Translations under genes and position numbers: made by a program
Notes under the pieces: model-generated
Told to the model about the DNA's origin: nothing
Seen by the model: only the letters and a program-made list of their open reading frames with translations
The model's database searches: none
Shown: positions 1-29,400 of the stretch, one piece after another
How positions within the stretch are numbered: the first letter of the stretch is position 1
Layout of the letters: every line of letters begins with the position of its first letter
Assembly (NCBI GenBank): GCA_025594325.1
Contig: JANHCV010000013.1
Coordinates: forward strand, 1,313,397-1,377,396
Direction of reading: 5' to 3'
DNA length: 64,000 nt
From: Blastocladiella emersonii ATCC 22665
Lineage: Eukaryota; Fungi; Blastocladiomycota

Positions 1-180
1 TGGCCCTACATCAGCGAGGCTCTGCTCGCCAACCAGTACGCGATCTTCGGTTGCACCGGCCTCGCGATGGCCGCCTACGTCCACTTCCAGGTGCCCGAGA
101 CCAAGGGCAAGTCGCTCGAGGAGATGGACGAGGTGTTCGGGTTCAAGTCCGGCGCGGCCGCTTCGGAGCTCAAGGCCTGA
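1..180 (+). CDS. 3' end of sugar-porter MFS transporter (duplicate copy, 5' part outside window)
   Basis: Frame reads WPYISEALLANQYAIFGCTG...VPETKGKSLEEMD...ELKA with TGA at 178-180. It contains the PETKG motif and is the reverse complement of 3806-3985. Confidence 0.9.
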   Translation, partial: WPYISEALLANQYAIFGCTGLAMAAYVHFQVPETKGKSLEEMDEVFGFKSGAAASELKA

Positions 181-649
181 TCCCCCCCCCCCCCGGCCTT
201 CTTTCGTATGGCGTGTCTCCATACTCTCTAGAAAAACCTTGTTTTGTCGTGTTACATACAGTTGTGCATTCTCCACTACTTGCTCGCAACGTCTCTTTCT
301 CGTCAAGGTCCTCGCCCTCGCCCTTCCCTCGTCTCGCGCAAGACGCTGAGCCTCGACTTCGTGTCTCTTGCGTAACAAACCCTAACAAGCTATAAAGTGA
401 GCCTTGATATCATGTTGAGTGTTCCGCGAGACCCGATGTTGGCGGAGAAGAGGCGCTCCGACGACGCGTTGCGCCACACCCGAAACGTGGCAGCCCGGTC
501 GCGTGACCGTAATTAACGCGGTCGCCATTCAAGCCGGCCGCGCGATCCAGTCTCGCTGCTTCCTCCCAAAAACAACCACCACCCACGCAATGAAACCTTA
601 TGAAGTACATGCAACGCGCTCCGCGCGCTTCACGGACCTCCCCGCCGAG
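1..649 (+). repeat. Left arm of inverted duplication 1 (pairs with 3337-3985; extends beyond window start)
   Basis: Position x pairs with 3986-x (checked at both ends and at the C13/G13 run). Translations of overlapping ORFs are identical. First mismatch is at 650/3336. Confidence 0.95.
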
Positions 650-2238
650 CTCGTGGCGGCGGTGCTGTGTCTGCCGCCCCTCGGCCTGCCGTCCCGCTCG
701 CGTCGGATGGTCTCGCGGCGGTTGCGCTAGACTCTGCGACTCAATGGCACTTGCGCTGCATTTATGCGTCCCGTACCGAGCTTTACGGGTGGCAGGATCC
801 CGCTCCTGCGAGTGCTGATCGTGACCAAGACGAGGTCTCGGACACGAAACCGTTTGGACCTTATATCGCTTACCTTGCCGCACGCGAGAAAGCCGCCGCT
901 TCTACTCGGACGAGCGACAAGGTTCGCTGGCTCCCGAGCCCCGACATTTTTGACACGGTGACGCTCAACCGGATCTGCCGTGGTTACGTGCCCGTCCACT
1001 TACGCCGAGTTCAGTGTACTCGATTGCGACCCATCACTTCCAGCGTCCCTCGTGATTGACACCCTTCCTTGGCTCATTGGCAATCGAGGGGAACATCTCT
1101 TTCGAGGCAATCTTTGTTCAGTGGCCTCCCTCTACGCTGGAGCCTGCAGCGTCGAGTGCACGGTCCAGCTGATGCGCCAGTTTGACGGTTACGAGGATTA
1201 CATGGCGGCGCTCGGCTCCGTTCGAGACTGGTCCCGCGATTCCTTACGGACACTTCCTCGCTGGGCTTCTGTGCGATCCGAACACCGCCCCAGGCATTCT
1301 CTCATCGCTTAATACTTTCTACTCTCACGAACACCCTCATGCGCACTGGCATCTGTACAAGTTGATTCGGCCCGAGGTCCGGCGCGGAATTGGCCGCTGG
1401 AAGCCTAGCGCCGAAGCGTCCATGGACTCGCTCCCTCTTGTTCATTTCACGCAAGCCGACTTGCGTGAGGCTCCGCCGATACGTTTGCTCAAATCGGCGT
1501 TCGAGTCGATGACCGACGACGGAGATTCGCCCAATAAGGGATCGTCCATCCACCCGATCGCTCGCGCTGATGAGACGAGCGCGCCGCTGCTGCCCGCTCA
1601 CCTCGCTGATTCGTCGTGAGCGCCTTGGCAGTATGCCCTTCACGCGTTGCTCACGCAAGTCCCGCGCTTCACGCTTACGGCCGACGCGATCCCGGACGAG
1701 CTTCGTTGGATTCTGTTCTCGCGAGGCGCTCTGTCGCGCAGACTTTTTGCGCCGCGGCGAGGCCGCCTGCGGCGTGTTGCCTGGCCCAGGCACCGAGACA
1801 GCGTGGATCATTGAGCAGCTCTACCGCGCTGCGCCCGAGGTCCTGATCAGCGAGCTCGTGCGGGTGAGCGTCACGAGTCCCGCTTTTGTCTGGCGCATGC
1901 TCCAGCGCGGTGCCTTGGACGGGCTTTGCTCACCAAAGTGGCTCCTCGCTGCCGCGTCCGTGATCTTTGACCGATGCCGCGGCAAGGAGGCCGCCGGGCA
2001 CGAGGCTTTGGTTAAGCTGTTTGCTGCAGCGGATGAGACCGCTCGTTCGGCCAAATTCCTTGGTTTGTACCGGACCGAATGCGAGCAGCGCGGGATTCTC
2101 CTGCTCCATCCACTTTTAGGTCGTCTCCATCTCTGTGAATACATCGCGCATCATAACCATATTTTCCTTTTCTTCGGCTCATTTCCTTCAGTTTTCGGTG
2201 ACTCGCGGCTGTGGGGATTGCGCGAGAAGCGAGAGTAG
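590..2238 (+). pseudogene. Frameshifted F-box-like orphan gene
   Basis: ATG 590 gives MKPYEVHATRSARFTDLPAELVAAVLCL (F-box-like FxDLPxEL motif). Protein-like segments continue in successive different frames (667-1059, 980-1312, 1182-1619, 1570-2238). GC is lower than in core genes. Confidence 0.55.
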
Positions 2239-2463
2239 ACTATCGTTAAGCACTTGGCGGTCAATGGCGTCTGACAACGAGCAGGCGACTGCGCTATTGC
2301 CAAAAACATGTCTTTATGCCGATCGCGTAAGGTGGATTGACCAATTTCCCCTCGGCACAGCCTCTCGTCAATCCCACCAGGCAAGCATGTTCCACGCGAT
2401 CACGTGTTTTGAGCAACGCGTCCCTCGCCGCCCGCCACCACAGCGCCAGGCGGCGAGCCGCGC

Positions 2464-3302
2464 TTGATCTCGGTCCGCGACGTCGCGCAGCTGCTCGCCG
2501 ACCTCGAGTACACCGCCGACCACGCGTCCGGCATGTCGTTCAATAACAAAGTAACGAGGGTCACGGACACGGATGGACCGGAGGTGAATGTATTCGTCGT
2601 CAAACACGCTCCTCACACTCGTGGCCGGTACCCGTCGTGCGCCGACTGGAACTTGATTTTCTTGAGCTTCTGCGACCCGAGGCTGGATGGGATGGGATGG
2701 TGGGCCGACTACGACGCGAAGGACGACGGACAGCTTGAATCGAGCGAGGCCGACCGAAGCGGCAGCTTGACGGCGGCGGCGGCAGCGGCGGCGCGGTGCG
2801 GTAGGACGAGCGGAGCGTGTGCTGGTTGCAGTCGAACTTGGCCGCCGAAACCGAGCCAAGAAGTTGTGCTCGCCATGATCTCGTTGACGGCAACGCGCGC
2901 TTGATCTTGATCTCGCGAGAGATATCGTAGGCGTCAGTTTTTTTTTCTGATCGTGACGAGAGTAAGTAGAGGCGGGGACGCGGTACCTCGAACATGCCAC
3001 GGATCACGGCCGTGGCCGACTTGGTGCTGCGCGACGTGAAGCCGCCGCGGCCCAAACAGGTCGCTGAGCGCGCGCGTCGTCTTGGGCTCGACGAGGATGC
3101 ATGCACGCACGCACGGATGACGGTGCCGATGTCGATGAAGATGATCTACACGCGCGGCGGCAGGCGAGGATCTCGAGGTGAGCACTCGGAGCAGCGAGAG
3201 CGAGTGGGGACCAGTCAAGAGCCGCGGGCATCGATACCGCACCGTACCTGCTGCTGCTTGCGAGGCCTCGCGCTCGCTCAACTTGGGTCGTCAAGTCCCT
3301 AG
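2464..3302 (+). pseudogene. Possible degenerate coding fragments of unknown function
   Basis: ORFs 2464-2904 and 2994-3302 have partly protein-like composition (DLEYTADH...DWNLIFLSFCDPRLDGMGWWADY). No family recognised. Confidence 0.25.
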
Positions 3303-3336
3303 GGCGCCAGCGCAACATGACGGTACGCGGCTTTCA

Positions 3337-3985
3337 CTCGGCGGGGAGGTCCGTGAAGCGCGCGGAGCGCGTTGCATGTACTTCATAAGGTTTCATTGCG
3401 TGGGTGGTGGTTGTTTTTGGGAGGAAGCAGCGAGACTGGATCGCGCGGCCGGCTTGAATGGCGACCGCGTTAATTACGGTCACGCGACCGGGCTGCCACG
3501 TTTCGGGTGTGGCGCAACGCGTCGTCGGAGCGCCTCTTCTCCGCCAACATCGGGTCTCGCGGAACACTCAACATGATATCAAGGCTCACTTTATAGCTTG
3601 TTAGGGTTTGTTACGCAAGAGACACGAAGTCGAGGCTCAGCGTCTTGCGCGAGACGAGGGAAGGGCGAGGGCGAGGACCTTGACGAGAAAGAGACGTTGC
3701 GAGCAAGTAGTGGAGAATGCACAACTGTATGTAACACGACAAAACAAGGTTTTTCTAGAGAGTATGGAGACACGCCATACGAAAGAAGGCCGGGGGGGGG
3801 GGGGATCAGGCCTTGAGCTCCGAAGCGGCCGCGCCGGACTTGAACCCGAACACCTCGTCCATCTCCTCGAGCGACTTGCCCTTGGTCTCGGGCACCTGGA
3901 AGTGGACGTAGGCGGCCATCGCGAGGCCGGTGCAACCGAAGATCGCGTACTGGTTGGCGAGCAGAGCCTCGCTGATGTAGGGCCA
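3337..3985 (-). repeat. Right arm of inverted duplication 1
   Basis: Reverse complement of 1-649. At the inner end the F-box start is cut to ...RFTDLPAE followed by a stop. Confidence 0.95.
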
Positions 3986-5560
3986 GACCGCGGAGAGGAT
4001 GTAGTTGTTGATCCAGTTGCTCGCGGTCGCGATCCCGACGCCCTTGCCGCGCACACGGGCCGGGAAGATTTCGGAAACGTATGACCAGACCACGGGGCCC
4101 CACGTCGAGGCGACTATTTTTTTGCGGGGAAAAGAAAGGAGGTGGGTGAGTGGCGAGGCGGTTGGAGAGGCGAGCGAGGTGGAGGGAGCGAGCGCGAGAA
4201 AATGTCAGTCGATCGGTGTCAGAGCGGGTCCGCGGTCAATGTAAGTGAACACGTACAGCAGAGGACGTAAAGATACATCCCAACGAGGCCGATGAGCGAG
4301 TAGGCGGTCGCCGAGGCCGGGTACGCGTCGGGCGTCAGGCCCGCGGACGCCGACTGGAACAGGTTGACCGCGATGCAGATGATCCACATGAAGGTCGCCA
4401 TGCCGATACCACCCCACTTGAGCAGCTGCGTGCGGCCCGCGCGCTCGATGAGGTACATGCCGGGGAGCGTGCCGAACACATTTACGAGTGCTTGGACAAC
4501 GACATTAACGGTCGTAGCGGTATTGCGCGAGAAACCCATTGCGATGAAGAGCGAAGAGCTGAAGTACATGACCGCATTGATCCCGGTCCACTGCTGGAAG
4601 AACTGGAGCATAACGCCAATGACGAGACGGTTGCGGATGCCCGGGCGCATGAGCTCGCCCCACGACGCGGTGCCGATCTGGCGCTCGGCGTCGATCGACT
4701 GCTTGATGTCGTGGAACTCCTGCTGCACCTCGGCGGCCTTGACGTCAGTCTGGCGCAGCTTGGCGAGCTGGGCGGCAGCCTCGTCGTCGCGGTTCTTGGA
4801 CAGGAGCCAGCGGGGCGACTCGGGCAGGAGGAACAGGATGAGGATGAGCAGGAAGCCGGGCGCGGCCTGGATGCCAAGAGCGAGGCGCCACTGCGAGTTG
4901 TCGTCCTTGGCAGCCGACTTGTACACCGTGATGATGATGGCGTTGACGATCGAGGCGAAGGCGATGCCGATGGTGATCATGAGCTGCTGGATGGTCGTGA
5001 GGCGGCCGCGGATGCTGGTCGGGGCGAGCTCGGCAATGTACAGGGGCACGGTCATGGACAGGATACCGACGCCAAGACCACCGACAAAACGACCAGCCAT
5101 GACAAAACCGACGCGCGACGAGATCGAGTCGGAGGCGGGGACCAGGGCCTGGATCATGGCGCCGGCCGAGAAGAACATGGCGCCGAGCCAGATCGACTTC
5201 TTGCGGCCGAGAATGTCGGCGGCGAGGGCCATGAACAGCGCGCCGGGGATGCAGCCGAGCAGGAAGAAGGACACGATGTTGGAGGTGCGGGACGTCGACT
5301 CGTCCGTCTTGACCAGCTCGCCGTTGACGAGGTTCGAGAGGCCGTAGAACAGCTGGAACGGGTCCATCTCGAGGACCGAGTTGATGATCCCGATCTCATA
5401 GCCGAACAGGAAGCCGCCAAGGGCCGCCGCAAAACTATACGCGTGTTGAGGGACAGGGCGGCGGCGGCGGGTCAGTCGAGATGTTTCGGCGGCTTCGTGG
5501 GTGATGGGGGTGTGGGGGAACGTACCTGACAAAGACCGAGTACAGGCCCGCGTTCGTCAT
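3806..5560 (-). CDS. Sugar-porter (MFS hexose transporter family), 3 exons
   Basis: ATG at 5560 (MTNAGLYSVFVS), with GT-AG introns 5435-5525 and 4114-4256. Motifs: GGFLFGYEIG, GRKK, PLYIAELAP..RGRL, PESPRWL, QQWTGIN, WGPVVW..SEIFP..RG, PETKG. Confidence 0.95.
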
Positions 5561-6597
5561 GGTCGAGGTCGAGGTGGGAGGGAGTGATGAGGGATCAGGG
5601 AGTGGAGGGGAGGGAGATCAGCAGCGGCGCTCGACGCCGCGCAGACGTTTGCTCTCCGCCCTACTCAGCCGGCCAAGTGCGAGTTCCACATCGTGCCGCT
5701 GTCGGCCATCTCGGCCTTGCTTCACGTCGCGCCGAACGGGAGCCGGCCATCGTCTGCACACCAGCGCGGGTGCAACGAGTACCTCATCAACGTGTACGAC
5801 GACGCTGCGAGCCTCACGCCGCTTACGATGCCGCAGATCGCCAACTCGCTTGACCTTGTGGACCGCCGCGATCTCGACGGCGCAAACACGACGCGCTGCA
5901 AGCACACGAGCCTGACCATGACAATACAATGCAGACTCTACGCGCTACTTAACGGATAGCTCATTCTCATCAGTTGATACGGAGCTGCAAATTAGCTGCA
6001 ACTCAATCGGCCCGAGTGAAGACATCATTCGATGCACGTCTCGCGCCGCTCGACCACTTGTCTGACATTCTGCTGGGACAGATCGGCATTTTATCAATTG
6101 GCGCGAGGCATATCTCGATCCACACTCGTTCGATGAGTCGTTCGAGCTTTTTACTTGATCGATCAACCATGTCCATGGGTCAGATGACAAGCAAGTCGAT
6201 CAACAGGTCGAATGACTTGAGCTCACGCCGATCGATAGTTATTCGACGCGTGGATCGATTTTCTCGGCCATCTCGAACGAGAACAAGTCGATCGACATTG
6301 GATCGACTTGGCGGGTCCGGCGCGGTTTGGTGATGCTAGCCGCGGCATCGGTCAAAGATCACGGACGCGGCAGCGAGGAGCCACTTTGGTGAGCGGAGCC
6401 CGTCCGAGGCCGGGTCGGCGTCGGGCGTGAGAGCGGGGAGGGTCCGATGGGGACGCGTCGCTTTCGGGCACGGGCCGGGCATGCGGTGGCAGTGAGTCCC
6501 ACCGGTGCGCGGACAGTCGGCCGTGTCTCAGGCCGGTCGGCTTGCCGCGGCCGCTTTCGACCTCCCCTCTCCCGACCCCGCCGCGGACCCGAATGCA

Positions 6598-9500
6598 ATG
6601 AACCCGTTCAACCACACGCCGCGCCCGCCGCCCCATGCAACTGCCGGCAACGGCCCCGCCAACGGGCCGCGCGTCGGTGGCGGCGCGCCCGGCGCCCCTC
6701 CGCCGCCCGCCGCCGGGTCGCTCGCCGCGCTCGCCGGCGTCAACGCCATGAACGCCAACTTTGTGCCCCTCCACGGCCACGGCCCGGTCGCGCAGCACCC
6801 GCACCTCCCTACGCGCCCGCGGCCGAACATCATCCAGGCCCCGCCGCCCGTGCTGCCCCACCACCACCCGCACATGCACCCGCACCCGATGCCGCCGGCC
6901 GGGCTCCAGCGCACCCACTCGATGCCGTCGCCCTCGATGCAGCACCCGCACCCGCCCGCGATGCAGCGCCCGCCCATGTACCAGCAGCAGCCGCAGCAGA
7001 CCGGGCTGCAGCGCACCTTCTCCATGCCGCCCGCCCCGCACTCGATGCAACACTCTCAGCAACAGCAGCAACATCCTCTCGGCCGACCAGGAACGGCCCC
7101 TCCGCCGCACCATGGGCCCGCTGCCCCACCCCCGTCGATGCCGCCGTCGGCCGCGTCGCCGCACTTCCCGCCCAGCCGCTCCGGCCCCGTCGCGCCCGCT
7201 GCCTTCCCGCCACCTGCGCAGCAGCAGCCACCTCCCGCACCACCACCGGCTGCTCCCGCGGCCGCACCCGCGCCAGCCCCGCCCACCGCCGCCTCGCCCG
7301 CCGCGACGCCGAAGCGCGCGCTCCCGTGGGCCGACTCGGGCCCGACCAGCGCCAAACGGCCCGCCGCCTCGCCGTCCGTCGGCCCGCGCAAGGTGTTCCG
7401 CCGCGACGCGCCGCCCGCTGCGCCGGCACCGACGCCCGCCACCGCCAGCCTCAACCTGACCGTCGAGCGGCTGCTGCAGTCGACCACCGCCGCCGCGATC
7501 GCCGCCAAGGCCGACGGCGGCGGCGGTGGCAAGGGCAAAAAGAAGCGCGGCGACGGCAAGGTGCAGACCAAGATCGACTTTTCGGGCGCCAAGCCCAAGG
7601 ACGAGCCGTCGTCCGCGACGCCCGCCTCCGCCTCAACCCCCTCCTCCTCCACCGACACCGCCGCCAAGCCGGCCGGCCGCACCTACACCATGATGGGCGT
7701 CGAGGTGCGCTTCCCGTTCGACGCGTACCCGTCGCAGCTCAGCATGATGTCCAAGATCATCGCCGCGCTCCGCGCCGGGTCCAACGCCCTGCTCGAGTCG
7801 CCCACCGGGTCCGGCAAGTCGCTCGCCCTCCTGTGCGCGACGCTCGCGTGGCGCGACGCCGAGGTCGGCCGCCGCCGCACCGCCTACGAGGCCGAAATGG
7901 CTGAGTACCACGTCAAGGTCAAGGCCTGGAGCGAGCGCATGGCTAAGGTCCGCAAGGAGAACGGCGCGGGCGCCGCCAAGGCTTCGGCGGCCGCCGCGCG
8001 CGCTGCCCGCGGACACGTCAAGGTCGAGCTCGAGAGCGGGTCCGACTGGTCCAGCGACGACGACTTTTTGCCCGAGGCCAAACCCAAGCCGCCGCCGCGG
8101 TTCGCCAAGGACTCCGACACCGCGAAACGCGATATCCGCGCCGCCCTGCACCCCGTCGCGCCCGTGGTCCCTGCGCTCGCGGCGGCGGCTGCCGCCAAGA
8201 AGGAGCCCGGAACCACCGCTGCCGACCCCGCTGCGCCCGCGCCTGCTGCTGCCGAAGACGACGACCCGTACTCGCCGCCCAAGCGCCCCGAGCTCGTCCC
8301 CGTCCCGCGCATCTACTTTGGTTCGCGCACGCACCGGCAGCTCGCGCAGGTCGTGCAGGAGCTGCGCGGCAACGCGACGTACCGCCCGCGCATGGCGGTG
8401 CTCGGGTCGCGCAACCAGTACTGCGTGGACAAGGACGTGCAGCGCGCGGCGAACCGCAACGACGCGTGTGCGGCGGCCGTCGACTCCAAGTCGTGCCGGT
8501 ACTTCGAGGGCGCGCGCGCGCTGTCCATGTCGCGGCGGCTGCCGGCGATCTGGGACGTCGAGGACATGCGCGACCTCGGGCTCAAGTCGCGCGGGTGCCC
8601 GTATTTTGCGTCGCGCACGCTCGCCGAGACGGCCGACCTCATCCTCTGCCCGTACAACTACCTGCTCGACCCGCAGATCCGCGCGTCTATGGGCATCAAG
8701 CTCGATAACGCTATCGTCGTGCTCGACGAGGCGCATAACGTCGAGGACGTGGCGCGCGAGGCCGCCGGGTCCGAGATCGAGGATATCCAGCTCGCCGCGC
8801 TCGCCAAGGAGCTCGCCGATCTCATCAAGTTCTTTGGCGAGATGGACGAGGGCGACGTCATTGCCCACTACGTCAGCGGTGTGCCCGACTACGCCGTGCT
8901 GCTCCGGCTCGTCGAGGCGCTCCAGGCGTTCCTCGCCGACCACGTCAAGTCGTTCCAGGAGGTGACGTTCGACCACAAGCTCAACGTGTACGCTTTGCCG
9001 ACTCTCCGAGCCGACACGGACCAAACTCACACTCGCTTGCTCGCCCGCGCGTAGCGTCAACCCAGACACGTTCGTGCGACACCTCGGGACCAGCGGCGTG
9101 ACGCTCGACACGCTCGTCGATGTGCAGGCCGCGCTCGAGACGGTCAGCGCGTGCAAGGCCGACCAGCGCGAGAACTCCATGGTGCAGGTGATCTCGGACC
9201 CGGCGTTCCGCCTGCTCGGCTCGCTGCTCCTGTCGCTTGGCAACCTGTTCGACCCGCGGTTCACGGCCGACTTCCATGTCATCGCCGTCGAGCGTATCGT
9301 GCGCGCCAACACGGGCAAGACCAACGGCCGCAGCACCGGCGCGGGGAGCCGGCGGTCGAACAACAGCACGATTGCCGACTGCACGTTTCCCTGCTTCATC
9401 ATGTCCCCCGACTCTGAACTGACCTGCGGTTGATCATGTAGACATGCGCGAGGAGTGGAAGCACAAGATGGCGCTGTGGTGCATGAACCCGGGCGTGACC

Positions 9501-10641
9501 TTCTCGGCGCTCGGCAAGCAGGCGCACTCGGTGCTCCTCACGAGCGGTACGCTGTCGCCCATGGGCACGTTCGCGTCGGAGCTGCAGGCCGACTTCCCGA
9601 TCCGGCTCGAGGCCGACCACGTCATCCAGCTCGACCAGACGTGGGTCGGCGCCGTCAACTCGCCCGAGCTGATCGGCACCTACCAGCAGTCCGAGACGCT
9701 CGAGTACCAGGACGCGATCGGGTGGGCCGTTGTCGAGCTCGCACGGCACGTCCCGCACGGCATGCTCGTGTTCGCGCCCAGCTACGCGTTCCTCGACAAG
9801 CTCATCAACCGGTGGCGCCTCACGGGCGCCTACGACGCGCTCGAGCGCGTGAAAAAGGTCTTCACCGAGCCGCGCGCCGGTAAGGAGGCCGCGTTCGAGG
9901 ACGCCATCAACGGGTTCTACGAGGCCGTCGAGGAGAGCTCGCAGCGCGAGCGCGATGTCGGGCACTGGCTCGGCGGCGGGTACGCTACTCTCATGTTGCT
10001 GTGGGAACCGTGTGCGGGAGGCGGACTGACTCGACTCGCTCCGTTTGTGTAGCGCGCTCATGTTTGGCGTGTACCGCGGCAAGGTGTCCGAGGGCATCGA
10101 CTTTTCCAACAACCGCGCGCGCGCCGTCGTGTGCATCGGGATCCCGTACCCGAGCGTGTACGTTCTCTCGCGTTGTCCTTCGCCCCGACGCTCGCACTCA
10201 CTGCGTTCTTCACCGCGTAGCATGGACAAGAAGGTGCAGCTCAAGAAGGCGTACAACGACCGGCACCGGTACGCGCGCAGGCTCCTGTCGGGCAGCGAGT
10301 GGTACGACATCCAGGCGTACCGCGCCATCAACCAGGCGCTCGGCCGGTGCATCCGCCACCGCAACGACTGGGGCGCGCTCGTCCTGCTCGACCGCCGCTT
10401 CGCCACCCCCAAGGCGCAGCAGGGCCTGTCCAAGTGGGTCCGCCCGCGCATCACCGTGTGGAACCACCTCGGTGCCGCGCTCGAGAACGTCGTCGGGTTC
10501 CTCGAGTACCGTGGCGTCAAGTACGCCCCGCCGCAGCCGCCGCCAGGGTCCGAGGCGAGGATCGAGGAGGTGCAGGAGGGTGACGCGGACGCGAGCGATG
10601 GCGGCAGCGACGAGGGCGGGTTCATGCCTGCACAACCCTGA
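6598..10641 (+). CDS. BRIP1: XPD-family Fe-S DNA helicase, FANCJ/BRIP1-like, 5 exons
   Basis: Motifs: ESPTGSGKS, IYFGSRTHRQLAQV (FANCJ-type), Fe-S cysteines (YC..C..C..CPYF), DEAHN, LTSGTLSP, RGKVSEGIDF, QALGRCIRHRNDWG. Introns 8988-9054, 9381-9441 (GC-AG), 9980-10052, 10158-10220. Long P/Q/A-rich N-terminus. Confidence 0.9.
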
Positions 10642-11099
10642 GATTGTAAGCTAGCAATATACACCGTAGGCTACATCCGAAACGATTGATGCAGGGGCCG
10701 GCAGCGCGGAGGCATCTCGCGAGCTGAAGGCGGGCGACAGGGCAGGCGACTTGGCCGACAGTCCAGGCGAGGGCGGCGCTGAGACACGACGCGCCGGCGC
10801 CGACCTGAGCTGCTGAACGACGGGCCACGCTCCGACTTGGACTCGCCGCTCGTGCGGGGTCAACCTACGTCCTTCCTGCCCGTTTCATCTCGGTGATAGA
10901 GGAGGCGGGGCGTGACTCGCGGTGCTTGGTGACGTAGTCCATCAAAACCAACGGATCACCGCCGCGGAGCCCATGGCGGCAGATGGGGATGACCGTGAGG
11001 TCGGTAGCGCGGCGGTGGCGCACCCATTCGGCGTTGACAAGGACGGACAGGATACACAGGCTCTTCGGACCTCCAGGACTGCCGCATGTAGAAGTCGAT

Positions 11100-18411: not shown

Positions 18412-18878
18412 GTGTCGACCGAGTTGAAGAAGAGGCCCGACACGGGCTTCTCGACGCGGTACGTGACGGTGATCTTGCGCTCGTCGCCCTTGGCGGCGAA
18501 GGGCTCGGCCCAGCGCAGCGTGATCTCATTGCCGTCGTACTCGAAGCCGGCGAGCTTGTCGCCCGTGACGGCGACGTTGTCGAAGCCGACGGCGTGCAGG
18601 GTCAGGCGCGTCGCGGCGTCGCCGAGGGCGGCGGCCGTCGGGACGGCGGCGTTGCAGCGGACCGTGTGGGTGACGGTGCCGTCGACGGCGTTGTTGGGGA
18701 AGTCGAAGACGAGGCCGATGTCCATGTGAACAGGCTCCAGCGTGATGTTGGGCGCATAGTGCTTGACGGCGTCGGCGGCGGCGAAGCCGGCGAGGTCGTT
18801 GTGCGGCTCGGCACCGGCGGCTTCGCCGAAGAGCTCGGCAGCGGCGCGGACGTGCGCGCAGGACGAGGAGCAGGGCAT
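15818..18878 (-). CDS. M1 family zinc aminopeptidase with C-terminal HEAT-like region and coiled coil
   Basis: Contains GGAMEN. HEMAH-x18-E is restored by splicing through a 9-nt exon (17594-17602). Also WLKES and YPGGGARIHMLR (catalytic Tyr region). ATG at 18878, three introns, C-terminal coiled coil VAALTKRVEELEKKIKEVE. Confidence 0.93.
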
Positions 18879-19919
18879 GGTTTGGTTGCGTAGCAAAGAG
18901 TGCGGGCGGGGAGCGAGGACGGCGTGCGGCGGGCGCGCTCGCTATTTGTAGGGCGGGCGGGTTGGGGAGGATCGGGAGGGGTCCGGCAGGAATCCGACGT
19001 CAGCGCGTCACAAGAGGCACAACAAGGGCGGGTCGGGGGAGGAGACGTGCCGCGAAAAGGGCCGAGGAGAACCCGCGCGCCTGCGGCACCGTCACCTGAT
19101 CAAATCGCCACACGGCCGGCCCGCCGTGCAGCGTGCGCGAGGCCCCCGTAGCTGGCGTCGTCGACGCGGAAGTTGACGCACTCGGCGGCCACCAGATCGA
19201 CATGGCGGCAGCGGTGCGGGCTGGCGCGATCAGGGACCCGTGTGCCGCGAGCGCGCTGGCGCGGCGGGCGAGGTGACGGGTGAGCGACAGCATCGGCCTA
19301 ATTCAGTCTAGGCTGCGAGGGAGAGCAGCACGGTGGCCCTGCGTTGCACTAAGTTACGTGGCAATCGTCCTTCTCGATGGGACGCCGATCGCGGCAGCGG
19401 GGGTGGCTCAGCATCGGCGAGCGCGCGCCCGCCGTGGCAACGCGGTCAGCTGACACCGTGTGAGCGGCGCAGCGCGTCCTTCCGCCCCGCTTCGCGTTAC
19501 CCGTTACATTGCGCCCGCGCGCTCCTAGACCTCGATGCAACCCATACATTCCGCTATGCGACGTCATGCACTGACTAGCGCGAGCACTCTTTGGGCACTT
19601 GCCGCTTGCCGCTCCAGGATCCCGCCCATGGTTGAGCAACGGGACGACGACGCGCCTTCCGATTCGACTTTGACTAGCTGTTCGCGTCGCGGCCGCGACG
19701 TGCCCCATGAACACATCGCACTTACCAATCACCATTTCATTGCAGAATCCACGAGAGATCAACATGCTGAGAGGAGGAACGCGACCACTCGACTGTGCTG
19801 TTAGTCGGACAAGTTTAAGCCATGCTCGCGAGCAAAGTCATAAATGAGAGACACCCCTGGAACGTAGCTATGGCAGCTCAGGAGATCTTCATGGACTAGA
19901 AATAGCGGATAAGCAGCTG

Positions 19920-21299
19920 TTAGCAGCCGTTCGCGCGAGTGCAGATTATCAGAGAAGTGCTTGTACCTTCTCGGAACAGAGGTGTGATCCGCTCACGGCC
20001 AAGCAATGTGAGCAACTCATCAAGATTGGCGCGGCCCTCGTCAAAGCTGGAGTTGAGCACGTCGTAGATGACGAGGACGTAGTCTGAATCCTTCAAATAC
20101 CCAGTTGGACGAAACTCTTTGAGGACGGTAAGGCCTGCTCCGCTGGAATGCAAAAACAGGACGGGCGCTTCGCTCGCAGAAGAATTGGGGAATTTGGAAA
20201 GGTGGTCCGCCACGTCGTGGGGGCGATCGAAGCACTCGTAAATCGCAAGACAAGCTTTAGCTGACCGGGTAGCGGCAGACTTGCACGCTTTTCCATAGGT
20301 ATATGTGCGTGGGTCGTCCGGGTTCCAGCCGTGCGCGACGAGGTAGTTGTACATTTGCAGGACGCCGGCGGCAGTCATCGGCACTGAATCAAGAAACGGA
20401 TGCCGGTCATTGCTGCGCTGCACGTTTGACTCGAGTACCTGCTGCACAAGCCGGCGGCCGTCCATACCGAACCGAGACGCCGAAAAGAGTGAAAACGCGG
20501 TTTCGTGGAAGCTTTGGACTGCATACGCCGCGCAGAATTCAATGATGGTCGGCGGTAGTGCCGTATTTTTGTAGGTGTGGAGGTCGACCAATTGGCGGGA
20601 CGACTTGCCGTACAGCGAAGAGATCCCTCTCCAAACGTTGAGGTCGACCGGAATGGAAAGCAGCCCAGGGGCGGAGATGCGCATCGAATCAAGGAGATGC
20701 TCGAGCATGACCATGTCGTTAATGTCTGCAAGGAAAAGGCACAACAAGGCTACTGTGAGCACTGGCGACCGCGAGGCAGCGCGTTTGGCATAATGATCGT
20801 CAGGGCGCTGCAAAAATTCGAGGAGCTTACCAAGATGAGCAGAGAGGACGAGTGTGGATGGAGCGCGTGGAAGTGCGGCAGCGGATTGTTGCACGAGGTG
20901 AGAAACGAACAAGTGAGAGACCACGTTCGAGCTGTTGGATTGTGCGTCAATGAAGAGGAGGTTGCAGATGTAGTCGAGATCGGAAAAAATCGACCAGTCG
21001 CTCCAACTTGCGGTTGAGGCGCCCAGCCCCAAAAAACTGGGCGACAGGTCCCAGTCATCGTCGTTCGAATGGTCGGAATCGAGGTCGTCCTCCTCCGAAC
21101 CATGGAACTTACGAGCGCGCGTTGAGATCGCGCGAAATCCCCAGTTCAGAGTTACCGAGGAGTCGCGCGAGGCCTCGCTGAGTGCCCGGGACGCGACGGG
21201 GACCGTGGAGCGCAGCGCGGCGAGCTGCAGGATCATGGTGCCTGGGACCGAGTGGAAAATTGCATCAAGATTCATTTGCATGTAGTCATTGGCTTCCAT
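19920..21299 (-). CDS. Intronless low-GC orphan protein (459 aa), possible degenerate N-terminal F-box
   Basis: Uninterrupted 1380-nt ORF in lower-GC DNA, where such length is unlikely by chance. N-terminus IFHSVPGTMILQLAAL..VPVASRAL resembles an F-box pattern. Confidence 0.7.
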   Translation of the reverse strand: MEANDYMQMNLDAIFHSVPGTMILQLAALRSTVPVASRALSEASRDSSVTLNWGFRAISTRARKFHGSEEDDLDSDHSNDDDWDLSPSFLGLGASTASWSDWSIFSDLDYICNLLFIDAQSNSSNVVSHLFVSHLVQQSAAALPRAPSTLVLSAHLGKLLEFLQRPDDHYAKRAASRSPVLTVALLCLFLADINDMVMLEHLLDSMRISAPGLLSIPVDLNVWRGISSLYGKSSRQLVDLHTYKNTALPPTIIEFCAAYAVQSFHETAFSLFSASRFGMDGRRLVQQVLESNVQRSNDRHPFLDSVPMTAAGVLQMYNYLVAHGWNPDDPRTYTYGKACKSAATRSAKACLAIYECFDRPHDVADHLSKFPNSSASEAPVLFLHSSGAGLTVLKEFRPTGYLKDSDYVLVIYDVLNSSFDEGRANLDELLTLLGRERITPLFREGTSTSLIICTRANGC

Positions 21300-21870
21300 T
21301 GCTGGGTGCTAGTGGTTGTCGAGGGAGCGCAAACCGTGAGAGCCGCCAGACGAGCTCAAGAACGCGAAGCAAAGGCGACGCGTTCCGATTGCCTTGACAG
21401 GGCTCTCGCGCCGCGGTCATCAACCTTTGATCAACGAAGCCAGGCTCGTCGGTCGCGTCGTTCATCCCGTCGTCAGGCTAGGGATCAAGTACCAGTGCGA
21501 CCTCGGCCACTGCGCACCTGCTGATGACCAACAAGTCCCTTTCTCGTCGCTATATCGAGAAATGAAGGAAGCACACTGGCTGAGTGATATCGTGTTGCGC
21601 TCGCGACCTGGCTCATGAACACGATTGTAAGTGGGTCGTGGTCGAGACCGGATACCGGTGAGGTGAGCGCGCAACAGGCGCGTCGCGGTTGGCTGCGAGA
21701 CATCGCGTGAGTGGCTGAGGCGCGCAGCCCCACCGAAACAGTTCCCTTGCGAGAAATCGCGCAGGGACGACTCGCACCTCCGCTTGACGACAAACTGGCA
21801 ACCATGGAACACCGGATTATTGGATGTAACATCGTGCAACGCTCAGCGGCGAAACGTATCATCAGGCTCC

Positions 21871-24523
21871 ATGAACGCGTCGCTTGACAGAAGTTCGCGG
21901 AGCCAAAGTGCCTTCAACTCGTCGGACCTGCCGTCGAACGGCACGTACGCGATCACGGACCACGAGACGGAGCGCGCGCGCTACTGGCTGCCGTGCGTCG
22001 ACTTCCCGACGGTGCGCCCGCGCCTGACGTTCCGCCTGACGGCGCCCGCCGACTTCGAGACGGTCGCCAACGGCGCCCTTGTCTCGTCGACCCCCAACGC
22101 CGAGGACGCCTCGCTCAAGACGACCGTGTGGGACCTGGACTTCCCGTGCCCGTCGTACCTGCTGTTCCTCGCCGTGGGCGACTTCAAGACCATCGACGAC
22201 CGCCCGGCCGTGACCGCGCTCGGCGAGGTGCCCATCAAGTACTATGCGCCCAAGAACTTTGCCATTGAGGACGTCAAGCGCGGCCTGGACTCGACGCCGG
22301 CCATGTACTCGTGGTTGTGCGCCAAAATTACGCCCATCCCGTGGCCAAAGTATCACCAAGTCATGTCTCCATTCATTGGTGGGGCCATGGAGAACATTTC
22401 TTCTGTTTCGTACGTGTTTTCCTGTTCTCCTGACCTATATGGGGCCCTGGAATCGTTGGGCGGGTCCTCGGAATCGTTGGGCGGAGCGTCGTGCCGCGAC
22501 CGACTGGTCACTCACCCTCGTCACCTCGTTGTCCCTTGTAGCTGGGGCAGCTTCCTCGCCATGGACAAGACCCACGAGCGCGACAACAAGTTTGTCATGG
22601 ACACGATCAACATCCACGAGATGGCCCACTCGCTCTTCGTACGCGTCTCGCTCGAGTGGACCGCGTCGCGCGTCGCCGACCACTAACCCGCGCCCCCTCG
22701 CTTCCCCACTTGTACCCATCATCATTCTCGACATCCAGGGCGACATGGTACGCTCTCGCTTCTCCCAGAACACACCTGGAACCGCCGCCGACTTACGCAC
22801 GCCCACCCGAACCGCTCGCTAGACCGTCGTCCGCTTCTTCGAGCACGCCTGGCTCAAGGAGTCGTGGGCCACCTACATCGAGTCGGTCTGGGTCGAGGAG
22901 CACGTCGGCGCCACGCCCGAGGAGATGCGCCAGCGTGCCCGCATGTACCGCTTCGACGACCAGGAGGCCTACATCCGCGAGACCCAGCGCTATCTCCGCC
23001 CCGTCGTTTGCCGCCAGTACGACCACTCGTGGAACATGTTCGACGGCCACCTGTACCCGGGCGGCGGCGCGCGCATCCACATGCTGCGCGGCCTGCTCGG
23101 CGACGACGTGTTCTGGCCCGCCGTCGGCGAGTACGTGCGCCGGTTCACGGGCAAGACGGTCGAGACCGACGACTTCCGCAAGGTGCTCGAGGAGTTCTCG
23201 GGCCTCAACCTGACGCGCTTCTTCGACCAGTGGTTCTACTCCAAGGGCTTCCCCAAGTTCAAGGCCGAGTACGCCTACGACGAGGCCAAGGGCGTCGCGC
23301 ACGTCACGCTCGAGCAGACCCAGGCCGACGCCGCCAAGGGCGTCCCGCTGTTCGCCATGGACGTGCCCGTCGAGTTTGCCACGGCCGACGGCGCCGTGCA
23401 CCGCGCGGTCGCGTCGTTTGACGGCAACTCGGCCAAGGCCGTTGCTGCCGCCCACACCGGCACTGCTGCGGGTCCCGGCGGCAAGCCCGTGCGCGTCGAG
23501 GTCGACCCCGACGGCTTCCAGCTGTTCGCCTTCGAAGGCGAGTTCAACCCGGGCCACGACGTGCTGCTCGCCACGGCCGCGGGTGCGCGCGACTGCGTCA
23601 ACCGCGTCCGCGCGTACCGCACGCTGCTCAAGGACGCCGACTTTTACACGCTGCGCAAGGTGCGCCCGATCGCGCTCGCCGAGAAGATGCCCATGGTCCG
23701 CGCCAAGATCGCCATGGCGCTCGCCGGTCTGCGCCACGCGCCCGCCGTCGACCTGCTCGTCGATCTGGCGGCGCAGGAGACGGACGATGTCGCGCGCAAG
23801 CTCATCTTCAACCGCCTCAACTTCAAGCACCCGGCCATCGCCAAGTTTGCGCACGCGACGCTCGCCGACCCCAAGGCCGACCTGACGTACGTGCAGCGCT
23901 CGGCGCTCATCACGGCGATCGCGGCGCAGCGCCGCCCCGAGGATTTCGCGCTCGTCGCCGCCTACGCCGCCGGCACGACCCCCGAGTTTACCGACTACAA
24001 GGACTCGGTGCGCGCCATGTCGTACCACGACGTGGCCGCGTTCCGCACCGTCGAGGCGGCCGAGTTCCTGCTCGCGCAGCACGCCGCGGTCATGGGCGCC
24101 GACTTCCCGTTCTCGGTCAAGGCCAACCTCGTGCAGGCGCTCGCGTCGGCCGCCGCGTGGGTCCCCGAGCCGCTCGCGCGCACCATTGGCGAGGCGATCG
24201 CCGAGGTCCTGTACGACCCGCACTTCCGCGTGCGCGCGTCGGCCACGGCCGCCATCGCCAACCTGCCCTACGGCCTGCCCGCCCAGTTCGCGGGCGCCGC
24301 CGACGCGGCCCTCGTGCTAGCCGCCGAGCAGGACAAGCCCGCGCTCAAGCGCACCATCACCCGCGCCCGCGGCAGTACTGGGAACAAGGTGCCCGAGGTG
24401 GCCGCCCTCACCAAGCGCGTCGAGGAGCTCGAGAAGAAGATCAAGGAGGTCGAGGGCAAGTGGCTCGCCAAGGACGACCTCGACAAGGTCCTCAAGGAGG
24501 CCGCCGAGAAGAAGTCCGAGTAG
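21871..24523 (+). CDS. 5'-truncated, chimeric duplicate of the M1 aminopeptidase
   Basis: From 21930 it mirrors the parent gene. The upstream frame is open with ATG 21871 (MNASLDRSSRSQSAFNSSDL then PSNGTYAITDHE). It lacks about 156 N-terminal residues but keeps GAMEN, HEXXH-E and the C-terminus. Expression unknown. Confidence 0.7.
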
Positions 24524-27500
24524 ATCTGTAGACGATCGTTTGATGTGGGGATGAATGTAGCGAGGTTGTAGTCGTCCTGGTGTCGTGCTTGAGAAGTTGA
24601 TGGTCGCGAGAGCTAGAGACTTCGTCGTGTGCAACCCGAGCTGCGCACGAGATGTCAAGGGCAGCGGATGGTGAGCGACGCGACCTCGCATGAGCGGCAC
24701 GTCGAAAGTCTGTGGGCGACCGCCGCGAGCCAGCGACCTGCTCGCTGCTCGCTGCTCGCTGCTCGCGTCAGAGCGCCAGAGTCCTTGTCGGTGGCGGTGG
24801 CCGCCGCGTGGCAGGCAGCGGGGCACGGGCGGAGGAGTATAAAGGGCGCCTCGTCGCCGCGCGCGGTCCTCGCTCTCTCGCCTGATCATGACCCGCTATA
24901 TTACCTCACCACTCCATGAAACGCATCCATGTATACCACATCAACACGTCGCACACGCCGCGGCGGTACCATGCGCCCATGACCCATGCATGACCCTAGA
25001 CGCTTGTTGCCGCCGGCGAGCGCGCCACCGCTCAAACGACTCGCCATCGTGTCCCCGCGCGCATCGCCCCCTCGCCGACCGCACCCTGCACTTTCTCTCC
25101 TACGGTGTCAGACTGCAGCGTGAGCCGTGGTGGTGATGTCCGCGCTCGCTCGCTCCCTCGCTGCGGCCGTTGTGCTGGAGCGGCTGCGGTCGGTGGCATG
25201 GCCGTCCCGCGCGCACGCGACACTCTGCCCGCTGCCGCTGCCCCGCGTGTGCTGGCACACGCCAGCTGCACACCCGTTGTAAGCCGCCGCCGCCGCCCCT
25301 TGGGTCGTTGCCACCCGAAGCAGCGCCAGCAGCAGCACGCTTGGCTCGGTCGCTCGCGAGCCACCGTGTTCCTCGACCGCTTGCTACTGCTTTGCCGTCT
25401 GGCTGAAGCAGCGCTTTCGCTCTCGCGCTCAGGTGCGCGCCTTCAACCCGTCGCCGTCCACGCTCACTCAACCTTGCTGCGTCCAAACATGCTCCCCGCT
25501 ACCCGGCGAGAGCGTCGCCGTCCTCGAGCGCCGCTGCGTGCCGCGGCTCATCCCGGCAGCCGGCCCCGCTTCTACTTTATGCTGCCGTCGTCGCGTCGGG
25601 CCAGGTCCCTCTTGGACGCGTGCCAGCATCGGCAACCCTTTTCCGCGCGGCGCGGCTCGGCGCGAATCTCGCGTACTTGGTGGCGCCCAAGCCGCGATGC
25701 TTCGTGCCGGCCACATCGCCGTCCTCCTCGGAGCTCATGTCCTCGCGCGACAGCAGGTCGACGCCAAACAGCGCCAACGGTTCCTTTGCCGCGGGCCGCC
25801 GCCCCGCTTCTTGGCGATGCGTGGCGATGCGCGTGAGGTCGGCCGACCGCAGGACACGAGTCGGGTGGGGATCTTCGTTCTCGTCAACCAGCTCGGCGGC
25901 GGTCGGCATGCCGAACTTCCGAACTTGCGCGCGCGCCGTCGCGGGGCGCGATCGCGGGCGACGACAGGTTGGACGACGACAGGTTGGGCGCGCGCCGGAC
26001 GGGAACATCAAACGGACGCAACGGGTTAGCTTAGCTCGCGGACGGCGAGCTCATGAACGTCGGGCAACCCGCCGCTCGTTCCTCCCGCGTACGAGGCGGC
26101 GCACACACCTCCTCGCGCGCGCGCGCCTTGGAACGGCCACCGCCGCCACTACAGCGCCCGTGTCTCGCGCGTCGCCGCCGCGTCGACCACACGCAGGTCC
26201 AGGACCCGGCGGTCGGCCATGTTGCTTGCTGCTTCTTCGCCTTGGTCGTCGACCCGGCGGCCATGTTGCCGCGCTTTGCCTTGGTCGTCGACCCGGCCGG
26301 CGGTCATGATGCTGATTAGCGGCGATCGTGATCGTGATCGTGGGCAAAGGATGGCGAGCGAAGCCAGTGGACGCGGTCGCGGGCCCGAGCAGTGGGAGCA
26401 GAGTGTCGCCCGGCCCGGTGGCCAACCCAGTGAGCGAGCGAGGTGGAGCTCGAATACGTGAACTAACCACCCCCGATGCATGCAGGGCCGTCAAACGACG
26501 CCGTAAAATTATGCTCACTAGTCTAAAATATCTCATGATATATCAGAAGATTACGTGCAAAGTTTGAGCCAGATCCGAGACAGGTCGGGAGCTGCCAGAT
26601 TGAGCGTTACGTGCTTGAATTGCCCACCCGCGCCGCGAGCTCGTCGCGACGGCCGCGAGTGAAAAACTTTTTCGCCTCGGCGCGCCCGAACACGATCTCA
26701 ACACCCCCATGCTTTGACTCGGGGATTTTTGCATTTCTGGGGTCCCTGATGGTCCCTGATCACGATTCAGTGATAAACAAGAATTATTGTTTTTGGGGGA
26801 ATTCATGTGTCTAAGTCGGCGGGCGGCGGGCGGCGGGCGGCGGGCTGGCTGGGCCGGGCGGCGGCCAGCGTCCCCCGCCGCGCCATCGTGGCCGCCACGC
26901 GCGCGAGCGCGCGCAAGTCCAGACAGGCGCCTTTCTGGCCCGAGCGTCGTAACAAAGGCGCCGCACATCATCATCACCACGCGTGCGTGCCTCCGCTCAC
27001 TCGGTCTCGTCAGAGTGTCGGCAGGGGTGGCGGGGAGGGTAGTAGACCGCGCGCGAATTCGGCTCGCCGTCGGCACGCACGCACGCTCACCTCGCGCGTG
27101 TGTACACGCTGAGCAACGGACGCATCCTAAGGCCTCGCTCGGGCCGCGCGGCGAAAGCGTGAATCAACGCGGTACGGCGGGTGCACGCGCACGTCAAGGG
27201 CGACGATCCAAGGGGTTCCCGCCGCCGTGGCCGCCAGTTGAGCGAGGCGGCAGCATCCATGCTCTCGCGAAGCAGCAGGCCGCCCGCCAGCTGGGCTAGG
27301 CTACGAAAGCGCGAGGTCATAAAGCAGCAGGTGCGAAAGGCGGCGATTGCGGCCGACGAGCAGCAGCGGACCCCGAAGCGCACCGAGCCGCGGTAGCCGC
27401 TCGCGGCGGCGTACCTCGCGCGCACCTCGCGCGCACACCAAACGCTGGCCCCGCTCGTGCGTGCGCGTGTGGCGACGACTCACCTGGCCCGCCATGAAGT

Positions 27501-29081
27501 TGCCGAGGCTGTGAGCACGTCCATGTAGGTCGGCTCGAACGGAGGTCGTGCGGCTCGGGAATGCATGCCAGCGGGGGACGAGCAGGTGGCTGGCGAGGAC
27601 GACGAAGCGGTCACGGTGGTCGGGTGAGGTTCGGCAGTGCAGATCGGCGGCGTGGGGCGACAGGGGGACCGGAACGAGGCGAGCGAGCGAGGGACGCTGG
27701 CTAGCGGGGCCCGCCGCTGAAGCAAACGTTCGCGCGCGACTAACGTAGGGCACGGCAAGCGGAAGGCGGCGTTCCCGACAAGGACGACGGGGACGGACGA
27801 GCTGCATCTGCATAGCTGACGAAGCAGTCCGACTGACGCTCAGCTCAGTCATACAGTAGTAGCGGTACAGCAGATGCGGCTGGGCACCTCACGACGGCGC
27901 CGATCCGCGTCAGGGCCTGTCCGGCGTGATGTTGCACCAAGTTATCACGTTGCATCGGCTTTCATGGTCATGGTGCATGGGGCGTCAGTCGGCGAAGAGA
28001 GAGAAGAAGAGGAAGGCTCGGGCCTCCTCACCTCTCCCTCCCGAAGCGCGCCCCGCGACGCGTCAGTCGCCGTCAGCTGACAAGGACGCGCAGCGCGGCG
28101 GCCACGGCCATGGCCACCGTGTGGCGTGGCGCGGCCTCGGTCGGTCAGGCACCCCGCTCACCTCCATGTCCATGTGCACGTCAACAAGGCAAGGCACGAC
28201 GTGGCACTGTAACTTGATGGAATCGCATGAACCTCGCCCGCAGCGTGCTCCGCGGGCTGCTCGCCCCATGGCATCGCTCTCGCGCTTGAGCGCTGCAGCA
28301 AGCAACCTCCTTCTGTCGGCGTCAAACGGCAGCACAGCTGGTGGTCCTCTCCTCGTTCCGTATGCATGTGGCCGAGCGGGTGCTGTCGCATGCGCCGCGC
28401 TTGCCCGCCGCCGCCACCACCACCACTCCACGCTCTACGTGCCAACCAGCGCGTTTGCCCTCGCCCGCGAGCTCGACGGCCTTCGCACGCGCACGTCCGC
28501 GCCGTCGCCCCCAATCGTCGCCACTCCTCCCTCCGTGTGTAACCCAACGCGCGCGTCGCCCTGCTCTGCCCCACCGCGTCCCGACCTGACCTGCTGCCTC
28601 CGTCAGTCGCGCCGACCAACGTTTCCGCTCACGGTCGTGCACCGCTTCGAGTGTCGTTTGCGCGCCATCGCCCTTGACCACCGCCCGTCCCTCGACGCTG
28701 CGGACCCTGCTTCGAATCAGCTCGCCCTGCCCTCCCCAACTCGGCGCACCTCGAGTCGAGTCGAGTCGTCGCTGCCGAGCTGGTGCCGAGCTGCTGCTCC
28801 TGCTCGCACACGCCCTCTTCTTCCCCCAAAGTTGGAACGACGGTCGGAGCTCGAGCGGCGCGCGCGCCATCTGCTGTCGCCGCCCCCGTCGCGGACTAGC
28901 AGCAGGCCCGTCGTCTCTCGCTACAGCTACCTCTCTCGGCTTGTACTTTATGTGTCCGCGGCTTCTGGCCCTCGTTTCTTCCTCGCGCGGCGCGCCCGCT
29001 GCAGCAGCGGCTGGGCGCACCGACGATCTCCGAGATTCTCGCTCGGCTCGGTGTGGGCCGCCCCCGAACGTGGCCGCCCTG
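21930..29081 (-). repeat. Right arm of inverted duplication 2
   Basis: Reverse complement of 11260-18411. Confidence 0.97.
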
Positions 29082-29400
29082 GGCGAGCGAGCGAGCGCGG
29101 CGCAGCGCAGCTGTGGGATCAACGTCGGTATGTCCGTGGACGCAGCCGGCCGGCCAGCTGAGCAACGAACGTCTCGGCCGTCACGCTGGCTGGTAAGCGT
29201 ACGGGGCGGCGAAACGCCATCGAAACGGCCGCGCCGGGCGTGCGTGCTGCTGTGCCGCGCCCGCAGCCTTACGATGCCTTTCGATGCCTTCGCCCGAACC
29301 TGACGCTTGGCCGCTCAAACGTTTCCGCGTCGTTGCATTCGCCGCTTGCGCGCGAGGGTGTGTGTGTTCGATCTCAGCTCGCGAGCCACGCCGGCGTCGA
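27044..29400 (+). repeat. ~2.1 kb dispersed module, copy 2 (inverted)
   Basis: Core matches copies 1 and 3. 29082-29250 is shared in diverged form with copy 3 (52130-52300) but absent from copy 1. Confidence 0.9.

Follow-up and report, generated by a model that had tools for sequence, protein, structure and literature searches.

Inverted duplications whose arms face each other across a single-copy spacer have been described in several systems. In human chromosomes, fold-back inverted duplications carry a 'disomic' spacer of kilobase size between source and duplicate, with short inverted homology at the boundary between spacer and duplicate and a loss of sequence at the break (Hermetz et al. 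2014, PMC3907307). In yeast, microhomology-mediated break-induced replication or fork stalling and template switching (MMBIR/FoSTeS) is associated with templated insertions (PMC11724301), the palindromes of primate sex chromosomes combine gene-bearing arms of more than 99.9% identity with a unique spacer (PMC8327919), and staggered-break inversions leave non-repetitive gene duplicates that flank a single-copy segment (Ranz et al. 2007, PMC1885836). Here, we analysed the final 64 kb of contig 5 (1,377,396 bp) in the assembly of the fungus Blastocladiella emersonii ATCC 22665 (32.65 Mb, 21 contigs) and describe two inverted duplications within 30 kb, termed event 1 and event 2. The whole stretch of 64,000 nt is called the window; contigs are designated by their numbers, C1 to C21, and negative positions denote the left flank of the window on C5.

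Like the human fold-backs, the two events have a kilobase-sized spacer between source and duplicate and a loss of sequence at the break; short inverted homology at the spacer/duplicate boundary may be a further likeness, with 13 of 18 nt in event 2 but an overlap of only 4 nt in event 1. They depart from the human cases in being interstitial and small, with 2.3 and ~7.5 kb copied, in having recaptured the distal DNA without a terminal deletion, dicentric or ring chromosome, and in being fixed in a fungal genome instead of arising de novo (PMC3907307). Overlaps of 3-4 nt, a paralog-like insert of 51 nt and one patchy, 'microhomeology' junction are shared with the yeast repair events, whose templated inverted insertions are mostly 5-34 bp long, whereas kilobases were copied here (PMC11724301). 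A search for family-A polymerases, a possible hint of polymerase theta, returned one frame of 1,348 amino acids on C16. The likeness to the primate palindromes includes arms of more than 99.9% identity, a unique spacer, genes within the arms, older divergence outside them and evidence of conversion, whereas the arms described here are much smaller, lie in autosome-like, subtelomeric, fungal DNA and show no evidence of selective maintenance (PMC8327919). The staggered-break model shares with this locus the non-repetitive gene duplicates on both sides of a single-copy segment, but it gives one natural and one new junction per arm, while the left copy is here natural on both sides, for event 2 on the fuller reading given below (PMC1885836). 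Both events appear to belong with structures already known, the inverted duplications made by fold-back or template switching, and gene conversion would later have homogenised event 2.

The two are independent inverted segmental duplications, which probably arose from fold-back or template-switch repair of a chromosome break or a collapsed fork; in event 2, conversion between the arms probably followed. The original prediction, made from the window alone, had assigned to both events the form B-C-B'-D, in which a block B runs naturally into the spacer C, its inverted copy B' runs naturally into the distal DNA D and the C|B' junction is new. The two inverted duplications are indeed in the sequence, with arms of 2,296 nt in event 1 and a core of 7,152 nt in event 2, and chance cannot account for perfect repeats of such length (2.3 and 7.2 kb). 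The new C|B' junction was recovered in both, whereas the passage from B' into D proved to hold a second new junction, where the right copy ends on its outer side (at 5632|5633 for event 1, at ~29402|29403 for event 2). The structures, the natural or new character of the junctions and the homologies at the junctions, described in the following, are observations. Feature coordinates are given in Table 1.

When the left flank of the window was included, the arms of event 1 (-1646 to 649 and 3337 to 5632) were found to have sharp edges and 0 mismatches, and the whole event measured 7.28 kb. The left arm had been taken as 649 nt long, since the window begins inside it. Inspection of the sequence left of the window, as the original prediction had proposed, placed the arm edge at -1646, with a flank that is continuous with the arm. 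The part of this arm within the window contains the 3' end of a sugar-transporter gene (stop codon at 178-180) and the start of an open reading frame (ORF) that had been called F-box-like. The complete coding sequence of the transporter is present in each arm, in the right copy with introns and a match to Pfam Sugar_tr (E=2e-96), and the earlier reading of the transporter as the D into which the right copy continues was thus an artefact of the window edge. The Pfam scans covered the ORFs of the arms, the spacers, a dispersed repeat and the nearby flanks, with exons treated singly. The transporter of the right copy begins at an ATG at 5560 with a short first exon followed by an intron, stops at 3806 and has only 72 nt of native upstream DNA. 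Each arm also carries the first 77 codons of the ORF with an LPxEL motif; in the right arm, this F-box-like frame is cut short after its start.

A paralog at C5:689939-693889 (86-88% identity) was colinear with the window from 43 to ~3285, straight across the boundary between the left arm and the spacer, which indicates that this boundary predates the duplication. At the outer edge of the left arm, a G-poor tract (12% G) passes from the flank into the 72-nt 5' untranslated region (5'UTR) within the arm. A G content that low was observed in only 0.4% of 80-nt windows here, and a TATAAAA motif is located 172 nt upstream of the transporter ATG on this side. Since the paralog is colinear inside and the G-poor promoter/5'UTR tract is continuous outside, the left copy is natural on both sides and appears to be the original.

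The right copy abuts the end of a dispersed repeat of at least 3.3 kb. Other copies of this repeat run at least 2.5 kb past the point corresponding to 5632|5633, and all of them end together at the position of 6337; 5632|5633 is the new outer junction of event 1, with a 3-nt CTC overlap. At the inner edge, the homology of the spacer with its paralog ends near 3285 and is followed by a 51-nt patch, which is not colinear with the closest spacer paralog. In other loci of the family, the corresponding stretch is kilobases away from, or inverted relative to, the adjoining spacer sequence. The patch overlaps with the spacer by GGT and with the arm by CTCG, and the 4-nt CTCG overlap, deduced from the paralog of the patch, is the only short inverted homology at this junction. 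With its likeness to a paralogous sequence, the patch is a candidate for a templated insertion. The right copy is a truncated inverted copy between two new junctions. Event 1 is young or unaltered.

A further inverted segment was observed exactly where the dispersed repeat naturally ends, a short way before the neighbouring helicase gene: 6336-6410 is a 75-nt copy (95% identity) of positions 1912-1986 in the spacer of event 1. Because it contains 4 mismatches and the arms contain none, it is older than event 1, and an earlier rearrangement has probably left it behind.

In event 2, the cores at 11260-18411 and 21930-29081 are identical over 7,152 nt except for a single-nucleotide polymorphism (SNP; 15137 on the left and 25204 on the right). 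The outer part of the arms consists of modules of a subtelomere repeat family, which lies 9-20 kb from many contig ends in fixed orientation, and the T in the left arm at the SNP is the derived base, as five family copies have C. Since a canonical copy of this contig-end family is present at 52148-54338, the region is subtelomere-like. Patchy homology of 18-20 nt at each edge of the core extends the arms to 7,190 nt and leaves a spacer of 3,482 nt. The junction between the left arm and the spacer is natural because a full-length M1 aminopeptidase gene spans it; the aminopeptidase and its Pfam N-terminal domain cross this inner edge as they do in a paralog of 920 amino acids. Thus, the predicted continuation of B into C was borne out in both events, by the colinear paralog in event 1 and by the aminopeptidase in event 2.

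On the right, the copied part of the aminopeptidase forms a chimeric gene with the spacer. Its annotated product, H9P43_009170 (100% protein match), takes the first ~14 residues from spacer DNA and is without ~170 N-terminal residues of the M1 N-terminal domain. No protein-level remnants of the aminopeptidase were found in the right part of the spacer. At the inner junction, the arm alignment continues in register at 13 of 18 nt, 10 of which form an unbroken run; this is far beyond chance. Short inverted sequence has been reported at fold-back junctions (PMC3907307), and the inner junction of event 2 could be of that kind.

Outside the core, the right flank was colinear from 29102 to ~29373 with five other chromosome-end copies of the family, at 88-95% identity overall and 98% in the inner part. 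On the left, ~186 nt were deleted at 11227-11248, between two similar short motifs, and 11103-11215 was ~86% identical to 29294-29402, with shared derived indels. The two outer flanks have in common a 17-nt deletion and two base changes, which are absent from five other family copies. Because of these common derived states, the left and right flanks are sister copies. The left element reaches ~10945, about 150 nt further out than the right element, which stops at ~29402. The left flank had also been considered as a much older relic (72-74% identity), and this was rejected when the finer alignment gave 86% identity and derived indels common with the right flank. The simplest history that these alignments suggest is one inverted duplication of ~7.5 kb, of which the right copy was cut at both ends as in event 1. 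Event 2 is the older of the two, as its outer 300 nt have diverged and its left copy has lost ~186 nt there. We hold the fold-back reading less firmly for event 2 than for event 1.

The core of event 2 contains 1 SNP in 7,152 nt, compared with ~14% divergence (86% identity) in the adjoining 108 nt of outer flank. The identity of the arms is thus far above that of the adjacent, co-duplicated sequence; event 1 offers no older flank for such a comparison. We infer that arm-to-arm gene conversion keeps the core identical and stops where the ~186-nt deletion interrupts the homology. Over ~1.5 kb, the third copy of module 1, located 10-12 kb from the contig end, showed 100% identity with the arms, which fell to 96-97% at the edges of this tract and to 78% in the flank, the signature of ectopic gene conversion. 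The copy on C21 (within C21:9000-18999) was 99.7% identical over 800 nt. Conversion is also suggested by a palindrome on C2, which has arms of 99.8% identity but inner remnants at 95.6% and 80.5%. Copies of the family were mosaic in general, with stretches of 99.7-100% identity (the arms, the third copy and the C21 end) beside stretches of 78-97%. This mosaic pattern indicates ongoing ectopic gene conversion between chromosome ends.

From the junctions we infer a series of fold-back steps. A break to the right of the spacer, or a collapsed replication fork, would have exposed a 3' end, which may have paired with a short complementary stretch a few kilobases back on its own strand. Reverse copying of 2.3 kb in event 1 or ~7.5 kb in event 2 would then have been followed by rejoining to the distal DNA through microhomology, with loss of some sequence. 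The spacer would accordingly be the loop of the fold-back and not a moving cassette. In event 1, the steps may have been serial template switches, in which a short stretch of a paralog was copied, then 2.3 kb backwards from upstream sequence of the chromosome itself, before ligation to a distal end that had been resected. Event 2 would afterwards have undergone divergence and deletion in the outer 300 nt, and then recent arm-to-arm conversion up to the deletion. A template-switch or fold-back origin fits because of the micro- or patchy homology, the templated-looking insertion and the broken repeat at the outer junction. Template switching, one of the mechanisms named in the original prediction, is supported by the junctions.

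Several points weigh against this interpretation. Classical fold-back ends in terminal deletions or dicentric chromosomes, whereas the distal DNA was recaptured here; both events are interstitial, with no terminal deletion, dicentric or translocated end, and only local loss is seen, in the repeat truncated at 5633. The junctions were read from flanks, paralogs and family copies rather than from an ancestral sequence. The 3-4-nt microhomologies of event 1 were deduced by comparison with paralogs, and none is strong by itself. The presumed primer of event 2 ends in 2 mismatched nt, and 5 of the first 8 nt of the right arm are mismatched, so that simple priming would require either error-prone initiation or a subsequent change or patch. 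The sister relation of the outer flanks of event 2 rests on ~60 nt, and since the right flank beside the core is 98% family-like, a later ectopic conversion has to be assumed.

Event 2 could instead be an inversion coupled to duplication, due either to staggered breaks, as described in Drosophila, or to a double template switch, which would have inverted the spacer together with the aminopeptidase and left the 7.2-kb block at both ends. When the core is viewed alone, the left arm is natural inside and the right arm is natural outside, where the flank is colinear with five other chromosome ends, and one natural side per arm is the pattern predicted by this model (PMC1885836). However, the left outer flank is a sister of the right one and extends further out, and the left copy thus looks natural on both sides. 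The old adjacency of 11239 with the far spacer end, which the model predicts, left no trace: no relic homology was found in event 2 between the left flank and the far spacer end or between the spacer end and the right flank. Drosophila duplications of such a kind did not exceed ~1.9 kb (PMC1885836), and event 1 does not fit at all, as its left arm is natural on both sides. A staggered-break inversion, also among the mechanisms first proposed, would account for event 2 only if the degenerate extension is ignored, and we regard this history as unlikely.

Alternatively, event 2 could derive from two pre-existing inverted copies of the subtelomere repeat, if the right copy broke and the left one served as repair template, with synthesis running past the repeat into the aminopeptidase until the end was captured by microhomology. 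The outer 4.4 kb of the arms do belong to the family found 9-20 kb from many contig ends, whose copies exchange sequence, and microhomology seems to mark the inner junction, in contrast to an apparently seamless outer one. Such a history requires, however, that the right-hand element was already there and inverted, and that identity later spread exactly to the limit of homology. The derived indels common to both flanks are more simply explained by one duplication, and event 1 is left unexplained. We therefore consider repair between pre-existing repeats improbable.

It is very unlikely that one or both palindromes are assembly artefacts, caused for example by chimeric or fold-back reads. The genome was assembled with LJA from PacBio HiFi reads with a mean length of 10.5 kb, and the assembly was purged and manually refined (PMC9730499); this treatment and the identity or near-identity of the arms would be compatible with an artefact. 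However, the mean read exceeds the 7.28 kb of event 1, and both structures are located 35-64 kb inside a 1.38-Mb contig. Chimeras that result from missing adapters or amplification would not be expected to show unique spacers (2.7 and 3.5 kb), a SNP, a degenerate extension that carries a deletion of its own, an insertion of templated appearance and biological signatures at the junctions.

The original prediction had regarded the spacers as lower-GC orphan-gene cassettes that a locus-level or mobile process flips and duplicates together with neighbouring host DNA. The lower GC content holds for spacer 2 (0.61, compared with 0.674 in its arms), which contains the 5' end of the aminopeptidase as well as an orphan ORF, but not for spacer 1 (0.613, compared with 0.620). 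Spacer 1 is a member of a dispersed family with at least 20 copies. Because it differs from its closest paralog by frameshifting indels and shows no excess of changes at third codon positions, it is decaying. The F-box identity assumed for it was not confirmed: none of seven spacer-1 ORFs matched Pfam F-box or any other family at E<=1, and only an LPxEL-like motif was present, at 419-730. The 459-residue ORF of spacer 2 had no Pfam family and no usable match in the ESM Atlas. Across the scanned ORFs of arms, spacers and dispersed repeat, Pfam detected only the transporter, the helicase and the aminopeptidase, plus a sub-threshold ankyrin match outside the events. No similarity between the two spacers was found at the DNA or protein level, and no mirror symmetry within either. 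DNA searches of the assembly showed that neither whole unit recurs elsewhere, only fragments do. The duplicated parts are the transporter gene, two thirds of the aminopeptidase gene and the subtelomere-family repeats, while each spacer occurs once or has no more than diverged paralogs. That these spacers are carried by a mobile element, or flipped by a programmed switch, is hardly credible. Long perfect inverted repeats can flip the intervening DNA by homologous recombination, and the spacers hold lineage-specific ORFs. However, no target-site duplication was found at the junctions and no recombinase or transposase Pfam domain in the scanned ORFs of arms, spacers and nearby flanks; the spacers are mutually unrelated, neither unit recurs whole, and the arms consist of ordinary genes and repeats, with arbitrary end points inside coding sequences.

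The original prediction had named an absence of other such structures from the genome, together with a lack of read support, as grounds for its refutation; other such structures were found. Two were verified. In the palindrome on C3 (C3:1237000-1252000), arms identical at 100% extend over at least 7,388 nt, a lower bound set by the stretch examined, and enclose a spacer of 164 nt (C3:1244449-1244612). In that on C2 (C2:1475000-1490000), the arms reach at least 3,062 nt at 99.84% identity, and the spacer measures 8.4 kb. The C2 spacer holds further inverted remnants (95.6% and 80.5% identity), which indicate an older, larger palindrome decaying from its centre. Three DNA searches also returned inverted match pairs with identical scores on C1, C15, C16, C17, C18 and C21. 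Members of the spacer-1 family are located in the arms and not in the spacers of other palindromes, the C3 arms among these. The recurrence is genome-wide and not local, and two palindromes within 30 kb are not clearly more than expected by chance, given the number of palindromes and their clustering in repeat-rich ends. With single-copy, unrelated spacers, no recombinase or target-site duplication and palindromes on other contigs, the proposal of a locus-level or mobile process was not supported.

Beyond the two events, the contig runs on for 35-58 kb with genes and the canonical subtelomeric repeat. The AAACCT telomere repeats reported for this genome (PMC9730499) were not found at the end of contig 5, and the true chromosome end is probably not reached. 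The terminal part of the window (61500-64000) was AT-richer than the rest, with a GC content of 0.585 compared with 0.667 overall. The 3' half of the DEAD_2 helicase gene between the events (8461-10541) has a 96% identical partial copy at C5:1179853-1181935, 130 kb upstream and beside a member of the spacer-1 family, which is another recent segmental duplication. A third, older paralog of the sugar transporter is present in the distal window (45584-47890, minus strand), with 76% DNA identity to the duplicated transporter. Just outside event 2, two lower-GC ORFs were observed, neither of which is similar to either spacer: the one at 29448-30635 (plus strand) matched no Pfam family, and the one at 30728-31957 (minus strand) gave the ankyrin match, with E=0.007 under the cut-off. 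Scans of the region for tRNA genes and Rfam families found nothing.

Table 1. Coordinates of the two inverted duplications and of associated features in the window.
Feature	Position	Strand	Remarks
Event 1, left (apparently original) arm, part inside the window	1..649	+	Whole arm C5:1311750-1314045; begins 1,646 nt left of the window
Event 1, spacer	650..3336	+	Single copy, 2,687 nt
51-nt patch at the spacer/right-arm junction	3286..3336	+	3286-3340 matches C2:1479729-1479783 at 54/55
Event 1, right (apparently derived) arm	3337..5632	-	2,296 nt, 100% identical to left arm
Terminal 704 nt of dispersed repeat	5633..6337	+	Truncated exactly at the right-arm edge; 87-89% identical to copies on C3, C16, C17, C18 and C19
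DEAD_2 (XPD/CHL1-type) helicase gene	6496..10638	+	Between event 1 and event 2; single copy here
Event 2, degenerate outer continuation of left copy	10945..11239	+	Subtelomere repeat family
Event 2, left (apparently original) arm	11240..18429	+	11240-15604, two modules of the subtelomere repeat family; 15818-18429, 3' two thirds of aminopeptidase
Full-length M1 aminopeptidase gene	15818..18878	-	Crosses the left arm/spacer boundary
Event 2, spacer	18430..21911	+	Single copy, 3,482 nt
Orphan ORF in spacer 2	19920-21299	-	459 amino acids; one 31% paralog, H9P43_009647
Chimeric aminopeptidase gene	21871-24523	+	Starts in spacer, in-frame fusion; annotated as H9P43_009170, 747 amino acids
Event 2, right (apparently derived) arm	21912..29101	-	Inner 18 nt (21912-21929) match left arm at 13/18
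Event 2, outer continuation of right copy	29102..29402	-	Family element cut off at ~29402, the real outer junction
Third, canonical subtelomeric copy of module 1	52148..54338	+	10-12 kb from contig end

The locus provides two dissected examples of how palindromes originate and age in an early-diverging fungus, event 1 being fresh and event 2 older. They have yielded a duplicate of the whole sugar-transporter gene, now preceded by foreign upstream DNA, and a chimeric aminopeptidase, which has entered the public annotation. The genome is rich in palindromes, although the word 'inverted' is never used in the genome paper (PMC9730499), and a census may be worthwhile, a point that does not rest on this locus. 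We suggest, tentatively, that B. emersonii might have an unusually active fold-back or inverted-duplication repair combined with conversion between arms, which would have given rise, across the genome, to dozens of nearly perfect palindromes whose loops measure a few kilobases. Such an activity, if it exists, could be a lineage-specific route to gene duplication and to chimeric genes.

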